Assembly: GCF_000150275.1 (NCBI RefSeq)
Contig: NW_002060951.1
Span: 1,808,297-1,872,296, forward strand
Direction of reading: 5' to 3'
DNA length: 64,000 bases
DNA from: Trichoplax adhaerens
Taxonomy: Eukaryota; Animalia; Placozoa
In this document: positions 3,244 through 56,984 of the stretch, in pieces
How the letters are laid out: every line of letters begins with the position of its first letter
Numbering within the stretch: the first letter of the stretch is position 1
Made by a program: the position numbers and the translations under genes
Notes under the pieces: generated by a model
Told to the model about the DNA's origin: nothing
The model's database searches: none
Seen by the model: the letters and a program-made list of their open reading frames with translations, nothing else

Positions 3244-4505
3244 TTACCATAATTTAAGAATTTCCTTACTGACAATATTAGCTATATGTTCTGAAAATTT
3301 AATTACAAAAGCATGAGGAGCGTTCTCCGAGTCGAGAACTATTTGACCCTGGGGAAATTTATCTACAAGATCTTGGTAGTAAGTTTGAGGTGCCCATTCA
3401 TCATTAGGACCATAATGAAAATGTAAACGATCAAGATTTGCTCGAATTCCGTCCATATCTAGATTGACAACCTAATACGCACAGATAGGGTAATAAGAAT
3501 GGTTAATAATTCACAGTGACACAAAATTTATAGTGATGTCGAATTAATCAATAACCATTACTAGTATTCTTCAGTGCTGCGCATAAAATTAGTACAGCCA
3601 AACGGCATTGAAGATAGAAATATCACTAGATTACTTAATTTGTTTCAATTTCTTTGCATTACCTCTCGAAATTCAGTATTAGCCATGTATAGGCAGTTGG
3701 ATACGACATCCTTATTTATTAATCTGCTGGTAGCTTCAACACAATATCTATCTGCATTGGTAGCTATACGTAATTAGAAAATAATTGTAAATACGCAAAT
3801 ATGACTAGCAGTAGACATATCAAAACCCATGTATAAGCGTATGTATTGGAATGATGCAAATCACTGAATAAGAAATTAGCTTAAATTTACGTTTATTTTA
3901 AATCATGACATCGATATACCTTCAGGATAATGATACCAACGAACAAGCCCTTCAAGAAATGATCTTGGCAGACAAGAAACTAAGAAGCAACCCCAAACCA
4001 TAGAGGCTCGATAGAATTTGCTAGCAAACTTGGGAACTAATCTAACACCATTTGGAGAAACTGCCATACGTTCAATAGTTGGAAAAAGTAAGAATGACTT
4101 AATAACCCTTGCATAAGGTAGCGACTTTGTTAATTCGATAGCGATATGAGCACCAATTGAATGGCCTATTAGTATTAAATTGGCAGAATCAGGAATATAT
4201 TGCTTTACATAGTCAAGTTTGTGTTGTATCTGTTGGCTAAGAGTATAAACATCTGTTTCTAAACCAGAATGGCCAGCATGATCGACACAATCGATCGATA
4301 AGCGGCAACCAGTAGCTTGAAATAATCGTATAGCAAAAGTAATATAGTAATCGCAAATGCCAGGATTACCAGGAATGATGAGAATACGTTTATCTCCCTC
4401 TCGATTTGCATTCACTGGTGATAATGTAAAATATTTCGTTGGTATCTTGCCAGTATAGCAAACTGATCGAGTTAGGTTATACAATTGCCTGGTTGTATCA
4501 GTCAT
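3244..4505 (-). CDS. LDAH: Lipid droplet-associated hydrolase (alpha/beta hydrolase, C2orf43 family)
   Basis: Exons 4505-3920, 3763-3663, 3471-3244 (GT-AG, phases consistent). Motifs IIPGNPG, GHSIG nucleophile elbow, LLFPTIERM, YGPNDEWAP, PHAFV. Confidence 0.93.
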
Positions 4506-37994: not shown

Positions 37995-39170
37995 ATGAAT
38001 AATTCTACAACTGGTCCAGTCGGACCGACACAATTATCAACACTGCAAATTACTTTCATAACATTATATGCTATACTTGGATTTATTGGGACAGTAGGCA
38101 ATACCATTATCATAATTTCCATAATTACGGTTAAGAAAATGAAAACACCTATCAATATCCTTATTTTAAATTTAGCTTTAGCTGGTTTCCTTATGTCATT
38201 ATTTTATATTCCAATATCAATGATAACTCAGTTTACGACAAATTATATTTGGACGCATGGTCAAGCTATGTGCAAAATTTATTATACAGTTACGTTATGG
38301 TCCGTCCAAGTCATATCTTATACTCAGGTCGCAATTTGTATTAACCGTTATCAAGGTATCCATCTCGTTATGAAAAAGAAATATCGTATGAATATCAAGA
38401 CAGTTATGATTGTTAATTTAATTATATGGATATTTGCATTACTATTTTGTGTCCCATACTTGATGTATTTAAGGGTAGTACCGCAACGTAATAATATTAC
38501 ACATTGTCTCTTGGTTTTACCGTTAACGTCACTGGATTTTGCTATCGATGGAAAGTTTGTTAGTTTTTTCTATTTTATGTATGCTGCCAGCTACCTGTTA
38601 GTTGCTTACTTAATTCCATTCGTAATTATGGTAATGTTTTACGGCATTATTATTAAAGGTTTAAGGCAAAGAAGACTCAGTCGAGGTAATTTTAATAACG
38701 ATAGGAATGAATTACATCGAAGCATCAGTATGCAACGAAAAGAGCGAGTTATCAAATTATTTATAGCTTGCGTTGTTATTTACTTTATTGCAAATCTGCC
38801 ATATGCTATTTCGTTGTTGCTATTTATTATTCATAAGATATCATGGCAAATTTTTATTAGTATTCGCTATTATTTGACCATACTGCAAGTTTTTGGTGTT
38901 GTATCCAATGCTTTACTCTATGGCTATTTTAACACTGGTATACGTAATTATTCAGCTTCCATAGCATCTAAATCAATTCGTCGTTCTGCATTAATTACTC
39001 AAACACCGAATACTTCATTCAAGACGACATCATTAAAAACCAATTTTGCAAAACCTTTAAATGATTTTAAAATGGTTAAATCTCTCTCATCCCCAGCTTT
39101 GGTTCGTATTCAACGATGTAATTCAGGAAAACAATTAAAGACAGCTTCTAACGTTGTAACGGTTGTTTAA
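37995..39170 (+). CDS. Class A (rhodopsin-like) GPCR, peptide-receptor-like, single coding exon, 391 aa
   Basis: Seven hydrophobic segments; N-terminal N-glycosylation sequons; GN (TM1), NLALAG (TM2), C3.25, INRY, W4.50, ECL2 Cys, YLIP..FY (TM5), NLPY (TM6), NALLYGYFN (TM7). Confidence 0.95.
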   Translation: MNNSTTGPVGPTQLSTLQITFITLYAILGFIGTVGNTIIIISIITVKKMKTPINILILNLALAGFLMSLFYIPISMITQFTTNYIWTHGQAMCKIYYTVTLWSVQVISYTQVAICINRYQGIHLVMKKKYRMNIKTVMIVNLIIWIFALLFCVPYLMYLRVVPQRNNITHCLLVLPLTSLDFAIDGKFVSFFYFMYAASYLLVAYLIPFVIMVMFYGIIIKGLRQRRLSRGNFNNDRNELHRSISMQRKERVIKLFIACVVIYFIANLPYAISLLLFIIHKISWQIFISIRYYLTILQVFGVVSNALLYGYFNTGIRNYSASIASKSIRRSALITQTPNTSFKTTSLKTNFAKPLNDFKMVKSLSSPALVRIQRCNSGKQLKTASNVVTVV

Positions 39171-39777
39171 CTGCAAGATACACCTTACTAAATATCAGTT
39201 TAACACAAACATGACAGCTATTGTTAACTGTAGGGTATTTTTAATCCATCAATTTTAATTATTTATTAAATGAACATTATTTCCAATTAATTAATCCATC
39301 TATGTAAATTAAACTTACTAATTGCTTCATGCATGTAAAATTTCGTAATTATAATTTGTACGGTTGCATATTAATATGATTCATTACCATACAGCATTAT
39401 CTTTGTAGTTATTGTCAAAACAGTTGAGTTTAGATGCTGTTAGAATAAAAAAATATGGTTTTAAATATAATTATTTAATCAAAATATTGACTTTAGAATA
39501 TTAATCAAAGAGTGTAAATCAAGCATAAAAATCTAAAGCCATTAATAATACCAATTAACTATGTTAATGTGGAATAATATGATATCAATCTGAATATTAG
39601 ATAAATAGTTTGTATTTAAGGATAGGATTTACAGTACGTAACATATAATTAAAAACCAACTATTTCAAGTAATTCGAAATTATTTAAGAAAAAGGTTCCG
39701 ACTATTTATCATGCTAAAGCAAATTAGTTTATGAACTCAAAACGAATAAATACAGAAACGAGCTCGTACTTTAGGCA

Positions 39778-40193
39778 TATGAGGTTGATAGATCAAGAAT
39801 CTTCAAAACTTTAGAAAATTAAGATTTATTGAACAAAACCTCGTTTACGAAGATACAACGTAATCGATTAGCTGAGGACCTCTAAAGAGAAAGAACTATC
39901 TTACTATACTAAACTACTCGCTTATATACTTTTCCGCGTTTACAGTCTTAGCACCTTACTTACTACACACTTCAGTATTAGCATCTCAAATACAGGATAC
40001 TTTACACCTTTCATGTGAAGCTCTAGTGTGAGCACTGCAGCGCTCTTCTTCAAAAGGATTACAGGTACTAAGCTAGCTATATTTAATACTTAAGCCTCTA
40101 ACGAGAATATCTATCACATGTTGAACACAACACCTACGGTAGACATTACTAAATATATCATCAACTTAGAATACAATATTACACTGTCTTGCA
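39778..40193 (-). mobile_element. Solo LTR (family A), 416 bp
   Basis: Flanked by exact TSD AGGCA (39773-77, 40194-98). Inverted near-identical copy of 54835-55253, with about 16 substitutions plus a 3-bp indel counted by eye. Confidence 0.92.
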
Positions 40194-43100
40194 AGGCATT
40201 AGGTTTTGCCTCCTTTATTATACGAAATTAGCTACTATAAGTACAAGATAGGAATTAAAAAATAAGATTATACGCCAGCGTAGTAGCAAAGTAATCTTTT
40301 TCAAACATTATTCAGAATGTCTTATAATGAAATAATTTCACGTTACTTATATTAACAGATAAAACTAATCTAAATAGTTTAATATTGGTTAGGATATGTG
40401 TTCAATAACAAGTATTTTTGATCACTTTTAAGGAAAATTAAAATCTGAAAATGTTGAAAATTATTTTTAGTAGATATTGTACGTTCTAATTTATCAGACA
40501 CAGTTTTGCTTCTGATTTGTGTATTTACCGAACTTTGCACTGAATTATTAGCTGATTATAAACCTAGATGAAAGATCAGTAGGTGGGAAAGTTAGTTACG
40601 GTTTACACCATTATAACACCTTAGAATCATAATATTTAGATATTTTCAAATTTACGCTTGCGAACCATAGGGTATCTTCAGATAATTGCATGTCAAAAGA
40701 TTCAAAAATTGATACCGTCACAATTTTAGGCTTGTATCTAAATATCAAATATAGTAGTGAGATGCTTTATAAAAAATTTCAATGTAGAACTACATCACTG
40801 TTCAATTACCTTCAAGCAACGATACCGTATATTAATTTTTAAATATTTGTATACGTACCAGAAGTGTTAATGAGATTACAGAATTAATTAAGATAATATT
40901 TTTATCACTAATTACGGACTGATTTAAGGTTCTACGGTTCTGTATGCTCTGAATTAATGATAGAAAATATACCGTAAACATATTTGGTGAAGAAGTTTTT
41001 CGAAAATACGTGATAGATTTAGGTATTATATCATGTTTACTGTAAGAAAACAATACTACGCGTAATTTCCTGAAATAAATTCCTCGAAGGGATTTTCTGA
41101 GCTGTTTATTGTAACAATTAAAATCCTTCTAGTTAAATACCATAGATAAAAATAATTCAGACTAGGGTCTACTTATAGACGAAAAAGCACTCGATTTTCA
41201 TGCCGCAATTTCCGAAAGGTAGATGTTGCGCTCACTAATTTTTGGTAAGTTATTGATTTGGAACATTAACTTTATTACTTATTTACTTTGCATTATACGT
41301 GTATGATAGGGTTATGCGAAGATATCCATATAATGAGATAGATCGAATTTATAGCGGAAAAGTTCTACGAATATAAAATTCACTAAGTATTGAAACTTGC
41401 TGAATACATAAAAAGTAAAATAGCACTCGCTTCCCTTATAGCATGCCCTCGAACATGTCCAGTAATTGTGCGATTTGTTTTAAATAATAAAATTTCTCTT
41501 TATATAGCAACGTACATCGATCAGAAATACAGATGTTATACATATCAATCAATATTGTTATATATAGTATGTTTTCTTTTATAGAATATACATTAAAGTT
41601 AACTATTGCATTATAGATAACTAATTGTGGCATATTATGAAAAAGGTATTACAGATGTTGTAAAGACAGATACCATATATAGAGTTGCTTATTAAAAGAT
41701 TAAGGTTAACTATATATGTATTCTCATATTAATTTATATAATAAGACTGATTATTCTGATATGAGATAGGTACAAAAGATATGTTTGTTGCATCAGACAA
41801 GGCTCTTTTTAATTAATGTAAACTCTCGGCTTGCATGAATTGCTTATGAATGAGGGGAATACTATGCAATATATTAACGTTTAGCTTCAACAATAAAATT
41901 GTTCCTCATCCTCCTCAATAAGTCGTCCCATAACAACAGGATATTCTTATGATAAGAAAACGCTCTAGTTGCTCCTATTCATCGAGTAATTTTGCGTTTT
42001 AATATTAGATTGAAGACTGATTCTGGGTACATATGTTTTGGGTTAGGTTTAAGGTTAGATTAATGGTTACAGTTTACGGATAAATTTAAATACAATGCTA
42101 GTTCAGATATTAAAACGTAATGCCTTTGCTATTTTGAAAAGGAAGGTGTTCATATTATTTTTTATTTAGCTTAGATAACCACTATAATGCTTAGCATAAA
42201 AATATTAATGATACTTACTTACTTATTACGTCATTATCTACGATTATACACGATATACATACCTTAAGATTATTGCGAACCTTGTCCGCTGGGTTACGCT
42301 TATTGTCTCTCTACACGCTCATAATATACTTCTTGACTAAATATAAGCTTGATACACTTATTCAATTTAGTCTTCTTATCTGTTACGTCCATTCCGTCCC
42401 ACCCTTAGAAACTCCTGGATTGTATACTTTCTCCGACGGATTACAGCTAAGATGGCCAACACGCCATCCGAAGCCAACTCATCATAATTAGATTTAATCA
42501 AATCTAGATTAATTTATCAGAGATAGATGTACGATATGCAAATCATAAAATTAGAAGTAATCGTGTATATGCTACGGCCAGAGATTGGCTAATTCTTGGA
42601 ATTGACCATAACATATACATATTTTTCAAGAAAATAACCTTGAAATATATTCTTAAAATAACGTATTATTTATCTTAAATTAATTGCTTTTATTTTTCAT
42701 TTTCTTTAATTCAATCTTTTAGACTTAAGACCAGCTCCTCTACTATCAATAATACAGTATCGATTGAAAAACGAAGATTGAAGTTTATTAATACAACATT
42801 AAATACAATATCTATGTATGTGTTTTGAAAGTCAATAATAAAACAATTACATTTTTCATCATTACAATTTCAAATATCAATAATGAAAATCAAAAGATTA
42901 TTTTTTATATCCTTGAGGCTGGAATTTTTCAAGTATTACCGTTAGCAAATGATTTCGTGCCGCTCAAAATAGAAATATCTATAGAATTCTTAAATCTCAT
43001 TATGAGGGTTCCAATTTAAGATCAGTTATTTTGATTATATATATGATTAGCATGAAACTCAGCCACTGGTTCTAGATATTAATAAAACACAAGTTTATGT

Positions 43101-46100
43101 TCATACTAAAGAGTCATAAATGCAATGTTTAAGCAGCCTGAATTTAATTTTTCTTCTAAACTTGCTTCTAAATATCTAAAATATTAAAATTTTTTCTTTA
43201 TTGTATACTAATTTTATCTGTATTGACTATATAAAATATAATATGTTCTTATTCATAGCAAACAATGCTGAAAATCTGTAATAGAACCTTTTAATATAAA
43301 TCCTTATAAATGTTGTAATAATGGCGTGAAGCAGCTTGATTGATTTGACCGTTAGTTTAAACTTATATAACTTTGTATGGTCCATCATTAATGAACTTAG
43401 AACACAATTTACATTTGAACGAAGGTTCATTTTGGAGCCGAAAAGCTTTCTAGATATCTAATTCTTATCGATACATCCTTTTCTATTCTACTCGCTCATT
43501 TATTTAATTGTTTCTATGTTTCGCTCCTCTTTAAGCATACATTATCCTTCATAATAATTTTTTAGGACTGCCTTTGTATGCTATATTCTCAGACTCGTTT
43601 CATTGATCAAGGTGCCCAGAAGGCTAAAAGTAATCTAGACAATCTTGGCTGAGTAATTATTTACGTAAGACATTTTCATTCGTGGATTGATCCAAAAGGT
43701 TAAGCATAAGTGATTTCTTTATTAAAATTTTTATAACTAAGTAATTTATCCAGTTCTATTTAATTATCTATACTAATTTCACACATTGTCATATCAAAAT
43801 CCAGTTTCAGTTGCCTATTATGTTTAACAAATTATTACTATACGAGGTGATATCTATTAGCGCTATCCGCTTTCAGTAGCTTTTTCCGGAAATACAGATT
43901 TTAAAAAATTTTCGTTTCAATTAAATTTATCTCCTAAGGAATTCTATCTTGAAAATTGCTCCTTCATTTTACTACTAGGTAGGTATACATTTATTTCGAT
44001 CTTCGAATTGATATCCACTCAAAATTAGTGAAATGAGAAAAATTTACTATAATTGGTTTGTTTAGTCTATTTACTATATAATTGTCAATAAATATTACCG
44101 TAGTTACTTTTTAATAGAAATTTATCCAAAATCATCAGCAATATAGAGTAGGATATTTTGCTTATGACGAAATTAACGCATTATCATTTTATTTGATATT
44201 ACCGTTAATAGTAGAGCTAATTTTAATATATCTAAATGTGTTTAGACCGAGGTGTATATATTACTTTCTTATCAATACTAATTTAAATATTTAGATATCT
44301 GCATTATTTAGATGCCTATAATTGCTTGAGGAAGCCGTTAATACGCGTATTCTATCTTTAATATTGCTGAAAGGGTAGGGAGGACACGAATTTTCTTGCG
44401 ACTGATATATTGTTTGTAGATGTAATTTTATTATATATAATATATTATCAGTGCTTAATGAAAGTGCTCTTTTAATATCCGAGATATCTTAAAAACATCT
44501 GAAGGGGAAGACAGAATAAATAAAATTTTTCTTCTAAGTATTGCGTTTGGATGTAGTATAAAATTTGTTAAATCATACGAGTATTGTAGCAATAAGTACA
44601 CTTTCAAGCTGGAATACCTTAAGGACAATATGCTACATAATATTTTTCCTTCTTAGTAATAGTATACATCCCTTACTAATGTTTTCTACTATGGCACAAC
44701 ACACTAGATTGAAAAGTTTTGAGTTTTTTATTTTAAAATTTTGAAGCTAGGACAGTGATCTGGGTAGCGTAAACCTGTATTCGCTTAGATAGCTAAACTA
44801 AATTACAACTATAGCAAGAAATGCTATACTAAGCAGATGGAAAATTTTGTTTTCCATCTACTGTAGTCAAGGTTCAACTAAATAAACAGTTGAAGTAATA
44901 ACGTGATTCATCATGTCATTCTAAGAGTTTGATGATGCATAACTGCATTACAGAATTAAAAATGGATTTAAATATTGCTCAACTCCATGCAGTAATTTTG
45001 CAAAGGAATAGAAACTAAATTCTTGGATAGAACAGGATGATACCTCTTTACATTTGCACCTATAGTAAAATGAATTTAATACTGAAAATTTTAAGCTTAA
45101 ATCGATATATCTCCCGCATTTGACATACTAGTTCACTCACTTAGCCTTAAAATGTAAATCGCGGTTTCTGCTTGTAAATAGGGATAGATGTAATACTTAC
45201 AAACCTTGCAATATCATTAATAATGCTAACAGATGATATAAACTTATTTAATATTATCGATATACAGTAATTCTAATTCAAACTGTTTTTCGAGTGCAGC
45301 GACTATTATACCAGCTGTATGATAGATTTATACTAAATTTCTCATGTTAATTTAACTTTTAACATCACAATCGAGCTATTTTTTCACTTAAACTAACCTT
45401 TACCTACAAGCTAACAACTGGATATCATCCATGTCATAATATTCTTGATCACTATTGCATACATTCTAGCTACTTTTTGCTTCTATTTTGTTTAGATTCA
45501 TTTAAAATTTATAATTAAACAAAATAAATTAAAAATTGCCATTAATTTAAAGTAGTGCATGAGTTTTAGTAGATTTGCGTATTTAATAAACTTAAACATT
45601 AATATGGTTAAAGATACTGCTATTACAATTAACATCTCAGTATTCAATATCAAGTACGCAGTGATTCTTCCATGCGTTAAGAATTTGCTAAACCTATTCA
45701 GTTTTCAAAATTTCCAATCTTGTAATCCTTCGCGTCTTTATAACATATAAAGTCTAACTAGACAAGGCCTGCTTTTAATTTTTATTCACAATTTCTATAG
45801 CATTCATTGTAATCACCTACCGTTACTAATAGCTTTTGACAATATCATAGCATCTTTGATTTACAGACAGTCTATCGCTTTCTCCATCAGCATATAAATA
45901 GTTTTGATTATTTAGATCTTATGCTATCAATTTTGTTTCTAAATACTTTCAACTTTATTATATTTCAAATATATTTATATCATTTATCTTGATATCGATG
46001 GCTTGATTATTATCATGATCACAGACAATACATTTTTCAAGCTGTTGTCTACAATTTTATTAAGTTTAAAATAGATTAAGCAAAATATTTATCAGGATGA

Positions 46101-49100
46101 TTTTATGACAGCTTTCACGGTATGCATTCCGTTTTCAAACTATCCACAATGAGTAGTTTAAACTGGTAAAGTATCCTTCATTTACCGCGATTCCAACAAT
46201 CTCGGTACTGCTGCTTCTAATCCAGTTAATATTTATATAGCACGAATTCGATAACTACTAGCATCATGAAAGCAAGCTAGAACTAAATCGTTTATGGTCA
46301 GTTTTAATAGTAACTATTGTAGTGAGTCTAACTGTGTCGATTGGAGACTGCTGTACTCTCTAAAACTCATAATTGGTGATTTTTACGACTTTATGAGTAA
46401 AACAGTTTATTTTAGCACGAAATAACTGAGATTCTACGTACCATATTTCTATATTGGAGTTTTAAGAGTAATAAGTGAATAGATCGTTCACATGTAATAA
46501 CTTAACCAATACGTATTAACCAGAAAAATCGTTTATCCTATTAATGGCATATTAATATCTAGGCATAGATAGCCTAATTACAACCGTCTATGGGCATCAT
46601 CAGTCATGAGTAACACAGTAATTACCCTATCATAATTAGTAAGTCTAAAAATTAAATTAGATTGGATCCTACTGTCATTAAAATGTAATTTAAATTCAGG
46701 TTAATTCCTTATTTCGAAAAATTCAATTCCTGTTATTAGCTGATAGGATTTTACAGTTTTTGTCTCTTTTAATGGAGCTTTCAGTTAGAATTTATTCATA
46801 TGTTAATTGATAAATCTAACATTAGCTAAACACCAGTGAGTGATATTTCCATTATCATCAATTTTCATGTTTTTGATTTAAGGTTGACTATGACATTTGA
46901 AAAGCTCATAATTAAATTAGATCAACGATGATTGATGACAGCACTTATTCTAGTCTATCCTTTGTAATCGTCCTATTATTTGAAAATTACTTGTCAAATT
47001 TTAATGACTTTGCTCCCATCATGGCCTTTTTTTCTTATTTATTTAATTCAATTTTAGTCGGAATTCACACTTGATGGAAACACAGATAAATATGAACGCA
47101 AAGATATATGTGTAAGAGACGCCAAATTTTGAAGTCAACTTAATCCCATTTTCTATAATGTAAGATGGATAATTTAGTTCTACTTACTGAAGGATGTTCT
47201 ACGTGTTTGAGCAATTACGTTGAATTTCTAATGTTTATCATTTAAAACAATTTTACTTAAAATGGTCCATTTCTTGATTATTGATATTAGACACATACTG
47301 TAAACGCGCATTTTCTCCATCGACAATGGATGATAGAATTTTTCAGAAATAGATACTAGCATCTCTGGTTTCATCATTTATAGGGTTAAGATAACTTAAG
47401 AATTGAAATTACAGCTACACGCACATTCACTTAGAGATGTAATCTCTACTTGTTTTGGAACTAACGATGTATTCCATGTTTGAGCGTAAACTATTCATAT
47501 TGTTATGACAAATTAAGAATTTAAAACGATGCATTGATTACTCATCAATCCATAGTAGATGACATAACTGTTATTACCAAATATCATCATTTTTACATAA
47601 TGCCATCTTTCGAGCAAATAACAAGTAATTTTAATATAGATATGGGGTTTTTCTCACAGTTTTTTCACTGTGTATATTAGTAAACATAACGTGCGAATAA
47701 TTTCCATAGATATGCGTAAGTAATCATTTTCAACTTTATTATTTCTACCAGCTTAATCATCGTATTAAATGGTGCTCTATAAAGACTCAGCAAAATAATA
47801 TTAATGTTAATAATCACCGTCAGGAATTATATAAAAGCTATTTATCAGCTTATTTGCAAATTTAGTTCGCTTGGTATAAAATGATTTTTGTATCTTGATT
47901 ATTATGATGAGCGTTCTAAGATTAAAATACGCGTATAGATGATTTTATGTAGATGAACAGGAGTCGTTGGTAAATTTTTTGAAATTATAAATTCCTACTG
48001 CTCGTCATTAAAAACTCTAAAAATATCAATTGCATACATGCTCAGCTCTCTTCAAATTCTTTGCTAGTCGCTGGTTTCAGTAGCCGCTTTAAGTAAAATA
48101 GTTCTAGCTGAGAACTTTAATCGCTATTTCTCAGAGTAAAATTTATATGGAAAACGAGCTTTGATTTATACTACATAAATTTAATGAAAATATGATACAT
48201 TACATACGTATTTTATATTCTGTCAACTTTAGGAAGTAAAAATTCATCGTAAATACTATATTAATAAGCTGCTATTTTATGTTAGTCATCGTAAAGTCAA
48301 AACTGATTATTGAATTACTGTCAACTTCTGCATGATATTTAGTTCATTATTATGATAGTAGATACGTTATTTTTCTTTCTTCACTAATAATGATCAATGT
48401 TGTTGTAGATTAGATAGATAAAATGTAGGATATTACTGATGCCATTCACATGGTTATATATACAGTAGCTCCGATGCGATAATAATTTTGAAGTACTTCA
48501 ATTAAAAAATATATTTAAATGCCGATTATTGGTTATTTTCATAATGCGCATCATTAATTCAAATCAATGCATTAGTATTTCCTGGGATGTATTTACGAAA
48601 AAGATTAATTGGTAGATAATTTTCTTTACTGTCAGTAAGGCTAGACAGAAATATATTAGGCTTTCGTATTAATAACACGATTGATTGTTTATCATTTTTT
48701 CAATTTATTATAAATTATCTTCTTGCGGTAAATGTAATTCTCATGAACTAAAGTAGCCTTAGATTTTAATTAGTAGGTCATAGCTTATAATGGGTATCTA
48801 TTATTTTAAAATGGTAATACTGGATCATATTTTACCAAAAGCAATAATGTTATGAAATTTGTAAGATTGAAATTTGAAGATAGTCATTATAGATACTTCC
48901 TCATGATATGCTAAAGTATCTCAAGAATTGGGTCATGAATAAATTATCTAATTAGTAGTGAATGCTAATAAAAGTATCTAGGAATTTTGCGATGAAACAG
49001 CTTAATCGATTAAAATAGAAATCCTTCTCATATGTGCCATAAAAAATTAGGTATTTGCCGATCGGTGTATTTTCAAACCGCTAAATTGTTTAATTTATTC

Positions 49101-50293
49101 AATAATTTTAAAAGTAACTATAAATTATACTGGGTAATCCTACTGTAGCTTTGACTAATATCAATTCAATTATATCCAATTTTGGTTAATAGGTTTATCT
49201 GAAGACTAAATATACTCGTAAATAAATTAAAATGTGTCTTATTTTAGATGGAAATACTTGGATGTTTCTGTATTATGATAGTTCCGCAGCTCAATCTGAT
49301 TTCCTTTTTGAAATCATACCTATATGTATTTTTCTTAAATTCTATTCCTATAGGCGTAAGTTATCATTTGTTTGTCTTTAATTACTCAAATCTATCGATT
49401 TTTACAGTAATAAATAACGTTTCAATGCGCTACTGCGACGTTATCAATTACACAACAGCTTTGATTTTCTTGACGTAATTTGACTTGACTTATGTTCATC
49501 TTTTGTTGATAACAATTACAATCAACTATGATAAATACAATTTTTTGCATTTCGATACCCATCTTTTGCTCTCTATTCGTATAAATAAAATGACAGATCA
49601 GCATCTAACACATTATAATGACTCTTTAAATTTCATTTCTCATTATTAATTACATCTGTGCAAGGTTTAGATGGCGATATAAAATTTAGTCTGATGTTTA
49701 TACTATTTTAGCGGACTAAAGTTATAAGAAAATTATAATATCGTCGATTCCTTACATGAGATCAAATTGCAAATTTTGATACCTGATCGCTACAACGACA
49801 TAATTTATGTAAGGACTGAATCATCATTACTAATAGCAATTGTACAGTATAATACCTATTATGGATTGAACAATATTTAAGACTTTCAAAATTAAAGACC
49901 CTAATCAATAGATGGATGATGTTATGGCTTCTTAATTCCCTTTTAAGGATGTGAAATATTATCATTACTCTAGCAACCGTGAAATTACACAATCATTGAT
50001 TAAAAATGAGTTTAACGATTTGAATATCCTTGAAAAATTTTCTGGTGACATTACTAAAATAACGATGTGAGCAAAGAATGCTATTAATTATGCTAGATCT
50101 ACTCCATAAATAATTTCATTTTCTGACTATTGATCTAGCCATACCCAAGCTATTTTAGAGTTGAGGTTATTTTACTTATTGATTTTGTTATTTTGATAGA
50201 TCTGGTTATTTCATTAATTATAATATGTTTAAAATATACATGAATTATGTTACTTTGGCTATACATTTAATTTCTATGAACATGAATGCATTG

Positions 50294-50729
50294 TGTCACA
50301 AATCAGCTTCGTGATAAGGATAACGTAAAATACATCTCTAAATCTCTAAAAATCTGGGGATTCAGTATCCCTACTCTCAAGAATTTAGACGCCTTTGATT
50401 CTACGTTAAACTCAACTAGACAATTGAGAACTACTTTATTCAACTATCTGACCGGATTATATACCCTTCTACAGCAGCTAACATTCATGAGTCATCTTAT
50501 AAAAATACTTAGGTGAGAACATCTACTAACTAGTTTTTCACAGTCGGACTACAATATGTCCATTCACAGAATCATTTCAGTGCACATTACAGCACAGCAT
50601 TAAATTTACTGTAACACATTTATAATTAGAGTAATTCCTATTGTAAGTAACTAGTTATAATATATTATCACTATATTATATTCACCAAATTTAGATAGCT
50701 ATTTCTTCACGGTAGTTCGTACCGTGACA
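50294..50729 (-). mobile_element. Solo LTR (family B), 436 bp
   Basis: TGTCACA...CCGTGACA, colinear with 14035-14605 (shared blocks such as GGGATTCAGTATCCCT, CGCCTTTG.TTCTACGTTAAA, TCTTCACGGT..TTCGTACC). TSD not exact (CATTG / ATTTG). Confidence 0.8.
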
Positions 50730-53700
50730 ATTTGCAACCATCATTATTCCTATGATAATACAAGTTATATCTAAGATTATACTATTAAAAAGAAGTAAAC
50801 GTTTTCTCATCGATTATTGCATATATAGATTATCATTTACCAGTTTCCCTAAGAATTGTAAGACTACTAACGTATTCTAATCATCAAGATTAGTATTAGA
50901 TTTTGATATTTTAATGACGTCATAAATTCATGTTAATACCCTCTAAAGCTTAGAACGGAAAGCTATTATAGATATCAACATAATCAATATATTCAAATCT
51001 AGCTATCAATCACTAATAGAACACTAAAGAATGGACAATAAGTAGCGGTTATGGGAAGGGTTATGTTTATGAAACAGCTTGCTGAGTAATATGTTATTAT
51101 AGCAATGTAAAATAGAGGATTATGATAATAGGAAGATGAAACAAAAACATTGTCTCGAACAATTGAACATGAAAATTTCACATCGTCATTTTACCAACTG
51201 GCCAGTTGCTATTGTTTAAATCTCTAAATTTCTGTTATTTTATGATGGTTATATATACCTAAAAAGGCGTTGTCATACGTAATATTTGCCATAAAAGTAA
51301 TTCTATCAAATTAACTTAAGCCAAGATAGGTAGTATTACCTAGAACTGATACAAATACTAATAGAAATTTACAAAATAAGCTACCCAATTTCTAGCTATC
51401 GTACAGATATAGCGATAAAAGCCTGCTCTTCACTTAAAAGCTTTATTCCAAATCTAAAGATCGGCTAAGAGATTAAGGTATGTTATTTATGTCATATTAT
51501 TTAACTCATATCATGTCTCAAAACTGAAGTATTTTTCTAGTTGATATACTTTATAACCATTTAATTACGCCTCAAGATGTGTCCTGTAAACACTTTTTAT
51601 AAATAAAGCTGCGATAGATTTTGAATTAAAACAATTTTAATGCTACTGCAAGTAAATGACGTTGCAGTAAATTAGGATATTACTTATACGCTGGTCTTCC
51701 TAAAATTATGAAGCAGCTTTAAGATTTGATGTCACGTTCTGATTTACCTAAACAATCATTCGAATAGACAAGACAACACAATTTGGATATTAGCGAATCC
51801 TGTCAAAGACTTATACCACAAAAATTACAATATTTTCTGAACGGGTAAAATTGAAGACTCGTATTAACTCTGAATACCCTTTCATATAGCGAATACAGTA
51901 TCTTAATTAAAAGTTTGATCTTTATCTTTTTACAGAATCTGTGTTATAATTTCTAATATCCCTTCGTACCTATAGATCTATTAAGATCGACCTCAAATAT
52001 TTATGCTATTGCTGAGCAAATACATCAATGCTATAATAAAAAAATATGTCTTGTCCACTATAGAGTCTATATTGCTATATCACTAGCATCGTTTAAACCA
52101 AATACACTAAATTTGTCTAAATTGAAATCAAACATCACCGTGTATTTTAAAATCAGTTTAGAATACCGTGGCGTAACGGTGATATTTAATGATGAAACAG
52201 TTTCTTGTTGATCAAATGAAAATTTATCACGGTTCGTATTAATTTAGACTCTAGTCAGGGATACTACTGTATTATTATCGATCACAGCAGGTCTACTTGC
52301 AATCAAACTGTTACGTTTAGGCGATTTTAGGTGGAATAAGACTATGTGTGTACAGCTGTTTTTACGGTAGTAAATTCATCTTAATTCGTTTTACATAGTA
52401 CATATTTTCACCGTTAATCGACTATCGAAATCCAGTCACAGATAAAACCTGTGCTTTACTTCTAGCCAATGTGAAGACAATTAATAGTTAATTTAAGACT
52501 TACATTTCTTTTGTAAGACTTACATTTATTCACATGATGAGACATGAGACTGTTGTAGACATCAGTATGATGGTGAATTTTGATGTCTTATTAACCATAA
52601 ATTATACATGAGGAATTTAATCAGTCGGATTTCTCATTTATTGGTCAAATACTATGATCTTCAGTAATTTGTTATTAATATATTAGATATAAAATTTTTA
52701 TGTGACTACCAATACAATAGTTGTCGCAGTTGATTATCATTTAACCATATAATCCCATGGTTAGGAGTTAGCAGTTGGTCCAATGTTTTCATTCTTTTAT
52801 TGCAGCAATGCTTGACCATAATTTGAAGGGAATGATAGTGTTATAGCTTATGCCACGGTAATTACTACTAGTCAATAGAAGCGAGATCATTAGAAAGGAT
52901 ATAGCTAATTAACTAAATAAAATCTCAAAGAATCCGTTAATAATAGCAAAATGGAAAATACTGTAAACCTGAGTGAAAATAATTAAATAGTGTCTAGGTG
53001 GTCTAATACTTATAGCAATTGAATAAATCAATCTCGTAAAAACAAATTATTCGGGTATTATCCGTATTCGCCAAAGCTGCTTGATATTTTCAAATTGCTA
53101 CTGAAGTTCGATCACTAAATGAGCAATTTAGAGAGAAACTCATCATAGACTGAATAACGTCCGATAGCTAGAAATACGCGAATATAGTAATGTTCTAACT
53201 TAACATCAGTAGATGCCTATGCAGATATATCAAGCTATTCTAAGTCTTCAATAAACCTCAAGGTAGGTAAAGTTTTAAAGGTGATGTGGTGATAAAAATT
53301 AATTACTTGTATTAAAAAATCTTAAATTGAAAATTCTTCGAATTGGTTAAATTAGAAACAAATACGGTGTATAGCATCCGCAAAATGAAATTTGAAACGC
53401 TATGTAGTCTATATTAGGGTATTTTAGTAATATTTTATTGTGAAACTGTAATTCTTAAATTTTTTTAAATGTAATATCAGGAAGGGTGATGAGAATTCAA
53501 TAACGCAAACATAAATACGATCAACAAAGAACATCATTAGAAGGACTATAAAGATAACTGTTTTTAGTACCATGCGTATTGAAAAGATCTTCCTATATTC
53601 AATAACACGCGTATCTCAGCTCAAAATTATCTTCATCATGAGAAAATGGTCACAAAATTGATACCGATAATATTGCAATATAACTATCGACAATCGTGAT

Positions 53701-54834
53701 AAATAAAGTAATGATCCTAAATAGTTTGTTTCAAGCGAGATATCGATGAATCGAAATAGCGAATATCAACTGAGTGATTTCTTAAGAAACAATTTTTAAT
53801 TTACCGTTTATAACTCAATCGTGTTAGGAATCCTGTATTGATACTGATTTAGCCAAAGTATTATTGTTAATGGGGTGAGTATGTAATAAACGGCCGTTTC
53901 AACCTATATTAGCCATCATCTATAATTACTTTGCTAAGCATAACAGAATACCCTACATCATATTACGACTACTTCATATTACTACTACAATTAGCCGAAA
54001 TTACTACGGAACAATACAGCGAAAGGTCGATAGAATTTGCTAGAATAATTAATCTACAAGACGATTTCTACTGCACGCTAAGTGGACCAGTAAACCAAAC
54101 AATATTTTATCTTCGTAACGGTGGTATAGTTGAAATATTGTAGTTACTAATTATAAAAATTCCTAGATTGATTTTTCTCGAGTGAAAGTGCCAAGAATTT
54201 TGTGTAAAGAGCGCCGATAACGTTAATAGTAAATTATAATAGCATCAATATAATGTTGTTAATCCAAGACTACTTGAAATAGCAATTAAGAAGCAATGGT
54301 GTAATCTACGATTAAGTATTTCTTGCTTAGATCGTATTCATTGGCAAAGTAAGAGGAATGGGCTATCATCGGGATATATAAACTTTTTATTGGTGTATCA
54401 TACTCAAATGACCCATTAAATTAAGCTGGAAACTTGTTAATAGAATAGTTTTAGAAATTACTCCTGATACACAAGTTAAACATAAACATTACTTAGTAAT
54501 TTTCAATGCTTTTATATCAGGGTAAAACTTTGATTACATATAATAATGTGAGAATATCAATACTCATTATTCCAATAATATTTCTTACTACTAAATACAC
54601 AGCATAATAAACGAGAAAAAGTATTACTAAAAGTATGAAAATGAAATTTAATTTTACTTGAGCAAATTGGAAGATGGTCAATAGTGTAGGCATAGCAACT
54701 AAGACACTTCAGTTTTCCCTAGAATAACGTAATTATTCCATGAACATGTGTATTTGCCTATTTATTCATGTGGTTTGATTCGTTTATGTAATATTAGAGT
54801 TCCATGTATTTCTTTTGAAAAAGAAATAGCCTTT

Positions 54835-55253
54835 TGTAAGACAGTGTAATATTGTATTCTAAGTTGATGATATATTTAGTAATGTCTACCGTAGGTGTTG
54901 TGTTCAACATGTGATAGATATACTCGTTAAAAGCTTAAGTATTAAATATAGCTAGCTTAGTAGCTGTAATCCTTTTGAAGAGGAGCGCTACAGTGCTCAC
55001 ACTAGAGCTTCACATGAAAGGTGTAAACTAGCCTGTATTTGAGATGCTAATACTGAAGTGTGTAGTAAGTAAGGTGCTAAGACTGTAAACGCGGAAAGGT
55101 ATATAAGCGAGTAGTTTAGTATAGTAAGTTAGTTCTTTCTCGTTAGAGGTCCTCAGCTAATTGATTACGTTGTATCTTCGTAAACGAGGTTTTGTTCAAT
55201 AAATCTTAATTTACTAAAGTTTTTTTGAAGATTCTTGATGTATCAACCTCACA
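54835..55253 (+). mobile_element. Solo LTR (family A), 419 bp
   Basis: TGTAAGA...CCTCACA flanked by exact TSD CCTTT (54830-34, 55254-58); TATATAA at 55100 and AATAAA at 55198. Confidence 0.93.
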
Positions 55254-55787
55254 CCTTTTTAAATTCGAAAATTTTTCTGGCGTTAAACATCTACTACCCT
55301 AGACTTATTTGTTTCAGAATAATATTTCCTTTAGACAGAGTAGTCCTAGCTCCTAATGAATATCATTTTATATTAATGTGCTTGTATTTCTTTACAATCA
55401 TTACAGATGCTCATTTCTAGATATCACTTCTTACTGGTGTTACACAATAAACAACTTCAGCGAAAACGTCCAATCTCTTCTTTAATCATTTTTGTCTGAC
55501 TAATTTTAGTATTCAAACAGTGACATCTCTCATTTAATAAATTTGCTATCGTCACAATTAACAAAAAATGTATTAATTATATATTATATATATCTCAGAC
55601 TGGAATACATACCGAATGTCATATTGCTATGATTAATATTAAAATATGTTAATTATATGTATGCATCTTAGATTGGAGCACATGCTAAATATCATCAACT
55701 AAAGCCCATAAAACTGACGAAATAGCCAGACTTGATCCGGTTGCAAGGTGAACTTTCTTCTAGCCCATACAAGATTATTAGAATAAA

Positions 55788-56984
55788 ATGGAGTGGAATT
55801 CTACATCAGCATGGCAGACAGTCACTGTTTTAGATCAATCTAAGCTTAACGGCGATACCAATACTAGCAATGATACAGTTCTGTTGCATGTTGGTTTTGT
55901 GGGTATTTATAGTGCGTTGGGCTTATTTGGATTTATATCCAATTTGACCATAATGTTATTAATCTCATGTGTTAAAGAATTGAAAACGCCTAGTAATTTG
56001 CTACTGCTTAACCTAGCTTTTGCCGGTTTAATTGTATCTGTCTTTCATATTCCATGGTTTATATTAACTCAACATGTTACTCAAAATGTTTGGTTATTTG
56101 GTGAAGCTATGTGCATCATTTATAATACCGTCAATTTATTATCCATTCATTTAATTTCCTTTACACAAGTTGCAATATGTATTAATCGGTATCAAGGCTT
56201 AAATAATGTGCTAAAATTCAAGTTAAAATTAAATAATCGTCGTGCCTTTTATGTTATTTGTACAATATGGATTTGTGCATTAGGTATGTGCATTCCTTAC
56301 TTGCTTTACTTGCGTGTTGTAACTTATCAACAAGATACGCAATATTGTATTTTACTTATACCAAGAACCCCTATTGATTTTAATATTGATGGTAAATATG
56401 TTAGCATAATTTACTTTATCTACGCTATCGTTTATCTAGTCGTTGCTTATACAGTACCATTTCTAACTATGACTGTCTTGTATACCTTAACAATTCGTTA
56501 CTTAAAACGTACCAAGTTTCGGCATTTTACGTCATCTCATTTTCGACGTCAACAGCTACAACGTTATGAACCAGAATATCGCATTCGATCATTTTCCGAG
56601 ATTAATACACAACATCGAGAACGTGTTGCCAACATATTTTTTGCTTGTGTTGTGCTGTTTGTGGCATGTAATTTGCCTTATGTTATCTATTTATTGCTAT
56701 TTATTATTCACGTCGTATCGCGGCGCGATTTCGTCAGCATTAAAAATTATTTGGCAGTGATACAAATGTTTGCTATCGTCTCTAATGCTATCTTGTATGG
56801 TTATTTCAATACTGGTATACAAAAGCAATGCCTACCATTTCGGAAATATATTATTGGTCAAGAAGCGAGTAACAAGACTTACCAAAGTGCAAAATATGGC
56901 GAAACCGATCGTAGCAATCTTAGTAAAGCTAACCAGTTAAATTGTGCACCTAAAGAATGTATTATTCGAGAAGCAACCGTGTAG
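55788..56984 (+). CDS. Class A GPCR, peptide-receptor-like, single coding exon, 398 aa; paralog of 37995-39170
   Basis: Seven TM segments; shares TQVAICINRYQG, PYL.YLRVV, DF.IDGK.VS, NLPY.I.LLLFIIH and SNA.LYGYFNTGI with the first receptor. Confidence 0.95.
   Translation: MEWNSTSAWQTVTVLDQSKLNGDTNTSNDTVLLHVGFVGIYSALGLFGFISNLTIMLLISCVKELKTPSNLLLLNLAFAGLIVSVFHIPWFILTQHVTQNVWLFGEAMCIIYNTVNLLSIHLISFTQVAICINRYQGLNNVLKFKLKLNNRRAFYVICTIWICALGMCIPYLLYLRVVTYQQDTQYCILLIPRTPIDFNIDGKYVSIIYFIYAIVYLVVAYTVPFLTMTVLYTLTIRYLKRTKFRHFTSSHFRRQQLQRYEPEYRIRSFSEINTQHRERVANIFFACVVLFVACNLPYVIYLLLFIIHVVSRRDFVSIKNYLAVIQMFAIVSNAILYGYFNTGIQKQCLPFRKYIIGQEASNKTYQSAKYGETDRSNLSKANQLNCAPKECIIREATV

Follow-up and report, generated by a model that had tools for sequence, protein, structure and literature searches.

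Two receptor genes and their core residues

Two intact genes for GPCRs (G-protein-coupled receptors) of class A, R1 and R2, lie in the window, that is, the whole stretch of 64,000 nucleotides of Trichoplax adhaerens DNA that was analyzed. The genes, the motifs that characterize them and the residues of the receptor core are as follows.

37995..39170, + strand: R1 (receptor 1) gene, single-exon class A GPCR of 391 aa, intact ORF
55788..56984, + strand: R2 (receptor 2) gene, single-exon class A GPCR of 398 aa, intact ORF
38184..38186 (R1 G64, GGT) and 56025-56027 (R2 G80), + strand: codon for Gly2.50, placed by alignment, motif table and codon positions
38313..38348 (R1, ISYTQVAICINR) and 56154-56189 (R2), + strand: lower TM3, Ile3.39/Ser3.40/Gln3.43 to Asn3.49/Arg3.50
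38793..38801 (R1) and 56670-56678 (R2), + strand: Asn6.48-Leu-Pro6.50, in place of the Trp of the CWxP toggle
38793-38795 (R1 N267) and 56670-56672 (R2 N295), + strand: codon for Asn6.48
38895..38921 (R1, GVVSNALLY) and 56772-56798 (R2, AIVSNAILY), + strand: TM7 from Gly/Ala7.45 to Tyr7.53 via 7.46, Asn7.49 and Ala7.50
R1, TM1-3: N36 (1.50), G64 (2.50), C93 (3.25), I107 (3.39), S108 (3.40), Q111 (3.43), N117-R118-Y119 (NRY)
R1, TM4-5 and ECL2: W145 (4.50), C171 (ECL2), P208 (5.50), Y216 (5.58)
R1, TM6-7: N267 (6.48), P269 (6.50), G301 (7.45), V302 (7.46), N305-A306 and Y309 (NAxxY)
R2, TM1-3: N52 (1.50), G80 (2.50), C109 (3.25), I123 (3.39), S124 (3.40), Q127 (3.43), N133-R134-Y135 (NRY)
R2, TM4-5 and ECL2: W161 (4.50), C187 (ECL2), P224 (5.50), Y232 (5.58)
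R2, TM6-7: N295 (6.48), P297 (6.50), A329 (7.45), I330 (7.46), N333-A334 and Y337 (NAxxY)

The two proteins share 46% identity across 329 residues, and the window holds these two copies only, with no decayed third copy. Both exceeded the Pfam 7tm_1 (PF00001) cut-off of 30.5 bits, R1 with 123.5 and R2 with 112.5. An AlphaFold2 model of R1 (mean pLDDT 79.4, TM blocks mostly ≥90) contained seven TM helices, helix 8 and a β-hairpin in ECL2, and it returned at least 500 GPCR fold matches in the PDB at E ≤0.001. By Pfam score (R1 and R2) and by the seven-helix fold of the model, the receptors belong to class A. Five of the seven helix reference residues are present in both (N1.50, R3.50, W4.50, P5.50 and P6.50), D2.50 being replaced by Gly and P7.50 by Ala. 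Given that class A membership does not depend on having every anchor, R1 and R2 are atypical rather than excluded.

Ballesteros-Weinstein numbering was obtained by HMMER alignment to the solved neuropeptide FF receptor 1 chain 9m0r_R. Here, NLALAG of R1 aligned with NLAVSD of the reference, which places Gly at D2.50; ICINRY aligned with IAVERF (Asn at 3.49), ANLP with SWLP (Asn at W6.48) and FGVVSNALLY with FNSSANPIIY (G7.45, V7.46 and A7.50). Given that the spacing from C3.25 to R3.50 is exactly 25 residues, I3.39, S3.40 and Q3.43 could be assigned without gaps, and codon positions were checked at every listed site in R1 and R2. The alignment reproduced the numbering counted by hand in a preliminary description of this DNA (G2.50, I3.39, S3.40, Q3.43, N3.49, N6.48, G/A7.45, V/I7.46 and A7.50), and the residues listed there as retained (N1.50, C3.25, the ECL2 Cys, R3.50, W4.50, P5.50, Y5.58, P6.50 and Y7.53) are indeed present in both receptors.

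In canonical class A receptors, an aspartate at position 2.50 binds Na+. At the canonical Na+ pocket positions 2.50, 3.39, 7.45, 7.46 and 6.48, the residues are Gly, Ile, Gly, Val and Asn in R1 and Gly, Ile, Ala, Ile and Asn in R2. Given that every usual Na+/water-binding side chain is absent, a canonical Na+ site in either receptor is, as judged from sequence, very unlikely.

A 22-gene placozoan family

R1 and R2 open a tandem array of four genes, which continues just downstream of the window with two more members (the fourth being TRIADDRAFT_58993). A genome profile search returned 22 matches at 372-490 bits, including R1 (389.6) and R2 (402.9), and the next match scored 140 bits. The family was defined by a score of >350 bits with the family profile and by six residue states: G/S2.50, I3.39, S3.40 (T/A in two members), N6.48 (G in one), a residue other than Asn at 7.45, and I/V7.46. 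All six states were found in R1 and R2, and the motif table has the same core in the other 18 paralogues (L005-L021 and L024). Position 7.50 is mostly Ala across the 22 genes. In a quick tree, the four-gene array formed the sister branch of the 18 further paralogues, with SH-aLRT support of 100% for the array subclade, 98% for the other 18 genes and only 88% for their join as a whole family. For R1, R2 and R3 (the third array member), the partner in the tree was in each case an orthologue from another placozoan, with 99-100% support.

The rewrite had been described as shared by two paralogues. As a feature peculiar to them it is not supported, the core states being common to the 22-gene family, and the likeness of R1 and R2 is due to common ancestry rather than to separate changes in each. 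Of the changes listed in the preliminary description, Q3.43 alone is confined to the four-gene subclade. This residue is fixed in 9 of 9 subclade sequences, with Leu in all 18 other family members. The subclade further adds Q7.42 and S7.48, and its fixed, specific pocket-facing residues are Q2.65, A5.39, Y5.42, Y5.47 and Q7.42. The change of DRY to NRY holds for R1 and R2 but not for the whole subclade, in which the residues at 3.49 are Asn, Asn, Ser and Asp.

A library of 1.84 billion protein representatives was also searched. Among the best 150 of 47,057 matches, G/S2.50 and N6.48 were combined only in family members, and the next full-length matches (≤178 bits) had D2.50 and W6.48. Across the genome and library searches, a gap of >200 bits separates the family from every other receptor. 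With a scope of the best 150 of these 47,057 matches and a word-limited search, the family so far appears to be restricted to placozoans. The 132 full-length nearest non-family class A receptors from the library served as a comparison set. Canonical residues prevailed among them, with D2.50 in 128, S3.39 in 123, P7.50 in 126, W6.48 in 113 and L/M/I3.43 in 126; neither N6.48 nor Q3.43 occurred in any of the 132.

In an alignment of 27 family sequences with a mean column identity of 34%, I107 (3.39) does not vary, and conservation is ≥90% at S108 (3.40) and N267 (6.48). Given that the derived states rank with the best-conserved columns of the family, the core has been redesigned rather than relaxed. 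R3.50, Y5.58, N7.49, Y7.53, P5.50, P6.50 and F/Y6.44 are kept and conserved family-wide, and the full D/ERY motif is present in 18 members. The family ancestor already lacked the canonical sodium/water pocket (D2.50 to G/S, S3.39 to I, N7.45 to a small residue and S7.46 to I/V), already had Asn in place of W6.48, and had fixed new polar residues at 3.40 (Ser) and 7.42 (Asn/Gln). The fold anchors and G-protein microswitches (N1.50, R3.50, W4.50, P5.50, Y5.58, P6.50, N7.49 and Y7.53) were kept.

Orthologues and selection

Orthologues of the array genes are present in Trichoplax sp. H2 (RDD42137, RDD42145 and RDD42146), that of R1 (RDD42137.1) differing at 2 residues. In another placozoan, represented by metagenome and SRA assemblies, the orthologue of R1 is 75% identical (dN/dS 0.06-0.12) and that of R2, P0008, is 86% identical (dN/dS 0.03-0.07). 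Orthologue dN/dS values were 0.118, 0.054 and 0.090 by NG86 and 0.025-0.056 by maximum likelihood, at dS >1.4. Open reading frames are intact in T. adhaerens, Trichoplax sp. H2 and the other placozoan lineage, and the extreme C-termini are conserved between orthologues. The dN/dS of about 0.03-0.12 against other-lineage orthologues indicates purifying selection rather than decay, as the preliminary description had proposed, and together with the intact reading frames it contradicts pseudogene status.

Automatic annotation of the H2 genome names these genes “Neuropeptide FF receptor 1,” “Substance-P receptor” and “Neuropeptide receptor 15.” As statements of orthology, these names were not supported in a similarity-based test, with a tree built without named bilaterian reference sequences. 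Scores were alike (67-77 bits) against NPFFR1, opioid, SSTR1, NPY2R and CCK1R receptors, and the family forms a separate clade with internal support of 98-100%.

Comparison with known receptors

Among solved structures, those closest in fold and in sequence are peptide receptors (CCK1R, δ-opioid, orexin, NPFFR1/2, SSTR and NPY2R) at 19-24% identity. The best matches were to RFamide-, tachykinin-, opioid- and CCK-type receptors such as NPFFR1 (PDB 9m0r and 9vi9), with E of 1.6e-20 and a Foldseek TM score of ≤0.89 by target. Bilaterian peptide receptors share with the placozoan family the seven TM helices and helix 8, the ECL2 β-hairpin, the C3.25-ECL2 disulfide cysteines, a GYFN-like start of helix 8, and N1.50, R3.50, W4.50, P5.50, Y5.58, P6.50, N7.49 and Y7.53. 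By contrast, the family lacks D2.50, S3.39, W6.48, N7.45, S7.46, P7.50 and Q3.32, the last being present in 78 of the 132 nearest non-family receptors. Given its own clade, the large score gap and the missing motifs, the placozoan family is not orthologous to bilaterian peptide receptors.

The pair of NRY and NAxxY is the textbook signature of melatonin receptors, which keep D2.50 and W6.48. R1 and R2 resemble MT1, MT2 and GPR50 in both motifs but lack D2.50 and W6.48, and none of the other 20 family members has NRY (S/D/E3.49). In the literature, receptors of the melatonin clade are described as lacking the DRY aspartate. Membership of R1 and R2 in that clade was rejected on the absence of D2.50 and W6.48, and no melatonin receptor occurred among the 60 best PDB sequence matches or the listed folds; the resemblance is convergent.

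Partial parallels are found in receptors in which the Na+ site, described as D2.50, S3.39, N7.45, S7.46 and N7.49 (PMC13167728; PMC13266011), or the toggle is altered. In the human orphan GPR151, the P-I-F triad naturally contains S3.40, the Na+ pocket is disabled and the DRY motif is non-canonical, but the receptor keeps D2.50 and W6.48, its pocket is blocked by K3.39, R3.50 is lost (VCF), and it is described as activation-resistant (PMC13167728); in the placozoan family, the carboxylate and the Trp are gone and R3.50 is kept. MRGPRX receptors signal with a small residue (G/S6.48) in place of the toggle Trp, but MRGPRX2 keeps D2.50, N7.45 and S7.46 (PMC13266011), all three of which are replaced in the placozoan family, where 6.48 is Asn.

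Single substitutions identical to those in R1 and R2 (Q3.43, N3.49 and G2.50) are also on record. CysLTR2 L3.43Q (L129Q) is a constitutively active mutant (10.1101/663153), and alterations at D3.49 can raise basal G-protein signaling (10.1101/2025.04.18.649542, citing Rovati 2007). In sequence alignment, the δ-opioid chain of 8f7s, an agonist- and Gi-bound complex, has LALAG at 2.50, which makes G2.50 compatible with coupling. The natural δ-opioid receptor has Asp at this position. In all these cases, a single position was changed, by engineering or by somatic mutation, in a receptor that is canonical elsewhere, whereas the placozoan states are ancient and fixed. Given that the latter sit in a co-adapted core, their net effect is not transferable from single mutants. 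Literature searches found no paper describing this motif set and no characterized family carrying it.

A probable re-made activation core and its alternatives

The data are best explained by an orphan, peptide-receptor-like family with putative G-protein signaling, without a canonical Na+ site and with a re-made polar switch, the whole arrangement being ancient and family-wide; a probability of roughly 0.7 is assigned to this reading. The ECL2 hairpin and the nearest folds suggest a ligand for these receptors, in all likelihood a peptide, and they would signal via G proteins. Lacking a carboxylate and polar ligands, the pocket would form no canonical Na+ site, and the small or hydrophobic residues probably allow TM2, TM3 and TM7 to pack directly. 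Asn6.48, Ser3.40 and Asn/Gln7.42 probably replace Trp6.48 as the transmission switch, a network predicted from general class A geometry. In the subclade, the hydrophobic lock would then have acquired Gln3.43, joined in three of the four receptors by Asn/Ser at 3.49. Given that comparable changes lower the activation barrier in other receptors, the basal activity of the four subclade receptors may exceed that of their 18 cousins. Natural receptors that bear residues known as activating mutations frequently compensate for them and lack constitutive activity.

A stronger claim, namely that the four subclade receptors are ligand-independent and constitutively active and deliver a tonic signal, with Gln3.43 opening the lock, Asn/Ser3.49 freeing Arg3.50 and Na+ absent, is possible but unlikely. 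It draws on the distribution of Gln3.43 (9/9 in the subclade, Leu in 18/18 other members, Gln in 0/132 outgroup receptors), on the Asn or Ser that three of the four paralogues have at 3.49, on the mutants of CysLTR2 and of D3.49 cited above, and on G2.50 in the engineered δ-opioid receptor in its Gi-bound active state. However, the fourth paralogue has D3.49, and the AlphaFold model fits active and inactive structures equally. A ligand is made likely by the extracellular half conserved between orthologues, the pocket-facing subclade-specific residues and the ECL2 hairpin, and natural NRY receptors, for example melatonin receptors, are ligand-gated. It is rather doubtful that the family serves chemosensation as a lineage-specific repertoire, with small molecules from the environment or from food as ligands instead of endogenous peptides, and with core motifs that drifted as in nematode chemoreceptors. 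Such a role is suggested by intronless genes in tandem arrays on several scaffolds with one pseudogene fragment among them, weak, sub-threshold matches to the nematode Srx chemoreceptor model, restriction to placozoans without orthologues elsewhere (best 150 of 47,057 matches) and pocket residues of the subclade that are very unlike those of the other 18 genes. Placozoan GPCRs are, however, reported to be enriched in peptidergic cells, a statement about the whole repertoire and not these genes (PMC10580291). The closest matches in sequence and fold are peptide receptors, and the orthologues are one-to-one at 75-86% identity with dN/dS ≤0.12, whereas chemoreceptor arrays usually turn over faster.

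Improbable, too, is a role of these receptors as non-signaling or arrestin-only decoys that, like atypical chemokine receptors, bind ligand without activating G proteins. Mutants that lose D2.50 and the Trp toggle are commonly crippled in G-protein activation, and DRY is altered in three of four paralogues, but the microswitches R3.50, Y5.58, N7.49, Y7.53, P5.50, P6.50 and F/Y6.44 are retained family-wide, 18 members have a full D/ERY, and the δ-opioid construct with G2.50 makes a Gi complex. That R1 and R2 are decaying or non-functional copies that lost motifs under relaxed constraint is hardly credible. The receptors do lack several canonical class A motifs, and the Pfam match covers 229 of 260 profile positions in R1; against this stand the reading frames intact in T. 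adhaerens, Trichoplax sp. H2 and another placozoan lineage, the orthologue dN/dS of about 0.03-0.12, the conserved extreme C-termini and derived residues that are invariant or nearly so across 27 sequences.

Implications

In accounts of class A GPCR activation, the sodium pocket and the Trp toggle figure as near-universal parts. Lineage-specific, motif-divergent GPCR expansions are common in invertebrates. The family's divergent core, as read here in its sequences, could represent an ancient, natural alternative class A activation core that works without Na+, Asp2.50 or Trp6.48 and relies on a polar switch of Asn6.48, Ser3.40 and Asn/Gln7.42, complemented by a high-basal Gln3.43 and Asn/Ser3.49 subclade acting as tonic signallers; this fuller proposition is speculative and of low probability. 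The database names given to the H2 orthologues need correction, being unsupported as orthology. The family, with 22 genes, is small, and it is intronless and easily synthesized, and deorphanization platforms have already been applied to Nematostella and Trichoplax receptors. Trichoplax is an animal without neurons, and a family kept under purifying selection without the pocket or the toggle in one of the earliest-branching animal lineages would be a natural experiment on which parts of the activation machinery are dispensable and what can substitute for them.

Identification and Residue Numbering of the Two Receptor Genes

The two class A receptor genes under study, designated R1 and R2, lie in AT-rich DNA (~30% G+C) with few other open reading frames. 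The features located in the window are as follows.

37995-39170, plus strand: R1 open reading frame, 391 aa; Pfam 7tm_1 well over cut-off
39084-39167, plus strand: R1 C-terminus; last residues VVTVV kept between orthologues
55788-56984, plus strand: R2 open reading frame, 398 aa; Pfam 7tm_1 well over cut-off
56898-56981, plus strand: R2 C-terminus; last residues ECIIREATV kept between orthologues
3906-4505, minus strand: 200-aa open reading frame; Pfam LIDHydrolase (lipid-droplet associated hydrolase), E 3.4e-38

An upstream stop sits a few codons before each receptor start. Given that both reading frames begin shortly after this stop and span seven helices and helix 8, R1 and R2 are single-exon genes. 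The encoded proteins are 46% identical across 329 residues. Within the window, tblastn (E ≤1) and an unfiltered six-frame profile search both failed to reveal any third copy, intact or decayed. The minus-strand frame at 3906-4505 probably represents a single LDAH-orthologue exon.

Residue positions were assigned by HMMER alignment to the solved structure of neuropeptide FF receptor 1 (chain 9m0r_R). No gap interrupted any motif: R1 NLALAG lay under NLAVSD in TM2, VAICINRY under VAIAVERF in TM3, ANLP under SWLP in TM6 and FGVVSNALLYGYFN under FNSSANPIIYGYFN in TM7. Given this gap-free alignment and a spacing of exactly 25 residues between C3.25 and R3.50, the Ballesteros-Weinstein positions counted by hand in the preliminary description are correct. 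Thus, G2.50, I3.39, S3.40, Q3.43, N3.49, N6.48, G7.45/A, V7.46/I and A7.50 (R1/R2) were all confirmed, and the residues said to be retained (N1.50, C3.25, the ECL2 cysteine, R3.50, W4.50, P5.50, Y5.58, P6.50 and Y7.53) are present in both proteins.

A Tandem Array within a Larger Placozoan Family

When the T. adhaerens genome (G000; 105.6 Mb, 1414 contigs) was searched with R1, two more close paralogues were found beyond the window (downstream of R2 by about 15 and 22 kb), and next in similarity came a series of receptors at ~30% identity. The third member, R3 (G000:C1406:1879822-1880787), reads SRY at 3.49-3.51, and the fourth (G000:C1406:1886945-1887964; TRIADDRAFT_58993) retains DRY. Apart from 3.49 (N in R1 and R2, S in R3 and D in the fourth member), all of the listed changes are common to the four tandem genes (hereafter the subclade). 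Orthologues from Trichoplax sp. H2 are present in the database as RDD42137.1 (R1, 2 substitutions), RDD42145.1 (100% identical to R3 in protein sequence) and RDD42146.1. The 90% cluster of R2 contains no H2 protein, unlike those of R1 and of the third and fourth members; the H2 counterpart may be unannotated or differently modelled.

As the alignment shows, the core of the rewrite is also present in eighteen further genes, or cousins (loci L005-L021 and L024). A profile built from 27 family sequences returned 22 matches in the genome, scoring 372-490 bits; below these came a pseudogene fragment and, at ≤140 bits, ordinary class A receptors. The genome holds roughly 900 class A genes, and one of the genome searches scored 147 of 994 candidates, the best-scoring ones, so that its listing is a biased sample for counting D2.50. 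The residues found are compared below with those of the 132 nearest full-length receptors outside the family.

Residues at rewritten positions in the subclade, the 18 cousins and 132 non-family receptors
2.50: subclade G; cousins G in 13, S in 5; non-family D 128, G 3
3.39: subclade I; cousins I in 18/18; non-family S 123, I 1
3.40: subclade S; cousins S in 16/18
3.43: subclade Q; cousins L in 18; non-family L, M or I 126, Q 0
6.48: subclade N; cousins N in 17/18; non-family W 113, N 0
7.45: subclade G or A; cousins C, S or A; non-family N or S 120, G 1, A 2
7.46: subclade V or I; cousins I or V
7.50: subclade A; cousins A in 12, P in 6; non-family P 126, A 3

Within the family alignment of the cousins, S2.50 pairs with P7.50 in four of five genes and G2.50 with A7.50 in 11 of 13. 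This pairing may represent covariation in TM2-TM7 packing, a reading that phylogeny confounds. A family fragment covering TM2-TM4 only and carrying two TAG stops (L054, G000:C1409:4982856-4986191; match at 4984356-4984691, minus strand) lies between two intact paralogues of the C1409 array, of which it is likely a pseudogene remnant.

Phylogeny and Selection

A maximum-likelihood tree of 46 sequences, including 15 outgroup receptors (LG+C20, SH-aLRT), gave support of 100% for the subclade, 98% for the group of 18 cousins and 88% for the entire family. R1, R2 and R3 each had a partner in a different placozoan lineage (support 99-100%), and the four paralogues are therefore older than that split. 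Among the paralogues dS is saturated (NG86 failed or gave dS above 1.6, and ML gave ~25), which made their dN/dS uninformative, and the orthologue pairs were used instead. Values were 0.118 (NG86) and 0.056 (ML) for R1 (75% protein identity), 0.054 and 0.025 for R2 (86%) and 0.090 and 0.048 for R3 (77%); with dS >1.4 in all three pairs these are approximate, yet far from 1. Against a mean column identity of 34% across the alignment, conservation reaches at least 90% for S3.40 and N6.48, and I3.39 does not vary at all. The remaining tail of R1 and R2 drifts between orthologues, and the extreme C-termini are conserved. The low orthologue dN/dS, the constrained derived residues and the kept C-termini together argue for selection and against decay, as had been proposed. 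The preliminary description had drawn that conclusion from the same changes appearing in two diverged reading frames; the shared changes are real and selected, but they were inherited from a single ancestor and do not represent two parallel events. By sequence, the T-V-V terminus of R1 resembles a class I PDZ-binding motif.

Rarity of the Residue Set and Comparison with Known Receptors

The family profile was compared with a protein library of 1.84 billion representatives, from which the best 150 of 47,057 matches were listed. Seven full-length family representatives at 355-460 bits and a 149-aa family fragment (P0018) were recovered; the listed matches that scored lower (≤241 bits) were all either fused gene models or ordinary receptors, and among the matches listed G or S at 2.50 together with N6.48 occurred in family members only. 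Family matches bearing names are all from Trichoplax, the others deriving from metagenome or SRA assemblies. A profile word search over 8000 candidates gave no named non-placozoan relative, and an ESM Atlas feature search yielded general class A clusters, all scoring equally, and singled out no particular relative. D2.50 is replaced by G or A in three non-family class A sequences (L023, G000:C1391:97096-97953; L027, G000:C1402:1118532-1119419; and library protein P0138), each of which also lacks S3.39, W6.48, N7.45 and S7.46. Independent losses thus seem to remove the whole pocket; by contrast, library protein P0156 has G2.50 with the other pocket residues intact.

The NRY and NAxxY pair of R1 and R2 recalls the melatonin receptors, but the other features do not fit and the best matches include no melatonin receptor. 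The likeness is convergent and this relationship was rejected, as was one to Tre1-type NRY receptors. The nearest natural precedents concern single elements: GPR151 has S3.40, a pocket blocked by K3.39 and no R3.50 (PMC13167728), and MRGPRX receptors retain D2.50 and carry G or S at 6.48 (PMC13266011). Neither unites loss of D2.50, S3.39, W6.48, N7.45 and S7.46 with intact R3.50, Y5.58 and Y7.53. Literature searches turned up no description of the motif set or of this family; the placozoan GPCR studies consulted treat monoamine receptors and the repertoire as a whole (PMC10580291). Table S3D of the latter places Tadh_TriadG58991 in a tachykinin_receptor_3 orthogroup; its number is two below that of TRIADDRAFT_58993, so that it may be one of the array genes.

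Predicted Fold and Possible Signaling Mechanism

The AlphaFold2 model (mean pLDDT 79.4, pTM 0.76) contains all seven helices together with helix 8, and its ECL2 forms a two-strand hairpin of the kind associated with peptide-binding class A receptors. The top ranks in Foldseek and HMMER were peptide receptors (CCK1R, delta-opioid, orexin, NPFFR1/2, SSTR and NPY2R) at 19-24% identity, with active and inactive structures mixed at similar scores. Given that no peptide receptor stands out as nearest, the names assigned automatically to the H2 orthologues express similarity and not orthology. The delta-opioid chain of 8f7s, a Gi- and agonist-bound complex, reads LALAG at 2.50, where the natural receptor has Asp; a peptide receptor with Gly2.50 is therefore able to couple.

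The Na+ site is formed by D2.50, S3.39, N7.45, S7.46 and N7.49 (PMC13167728, PMC13266011). R1 and R2 lack the carboxylate at 2.50 and the polar Na+/water-holding side chains at 2.50, 3.39, 7.45 and 7.46, and small or hydrophobic residues take their place, but both keep R3.50, Y5.58, N7.49 and Y7.53. In the mechanism proposed, TM2, TM3 and TM7 would pack directly on one another and the canonical Na+ site would be gone. The role of the Trp6.48 transmission switch would pass to the conserved Asn6.48 acting with Ser3.40 and Asn/Gln7.42, and coupling to G protein would be preserved, a point that the 8f7s complex supports.

L3.43Q in CysLTR2 is a known activating substitution (10.1101/663153), as are changes of D3.49 (10.1101/2025.04.18.649542). 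Gln3.43, in the hydrophobic layer beneath the former sodium pocket, and Asn/Ser3.49 of the subclade correspond to these substitutions. By this analogy, raised basal activity is possible, and only that because natural receptors are often compensated; outright constitutive activity, as earlier suggested, seems rather unlikely.

Subclade-specific Residues and Significance of the Family

Nine fixed differences separate the subclade from the other 18 genes: besides Q3.43, these are Q2.65 (L in the cousins), F182 in ECL2 (I), A5.39 (W), Y5.42 (F), Y5.47 (F), Q7.42 (N), V7.47 (A) and S7.48 (Y). In addition, subclade position 3.32 is T or N, not P, and the tyrosines at 6.52 and 7.43 are lost. Given that the subclade-specific residues are mostly pocket-facing, the two groups probably recognize different ligands.

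Lineage-specific, motif-divergent GPCR expansions are not rare, which tempers the weight of this family. The feature in R1 and R2 is nevertheless real, correctly numbered and under purifying selection, and the core rewrite characterizes a whole family of 22 orphan class A genes, so far seen only in placozoans; in the subclade, the 3.49 changes and Q3.43 were added to it.
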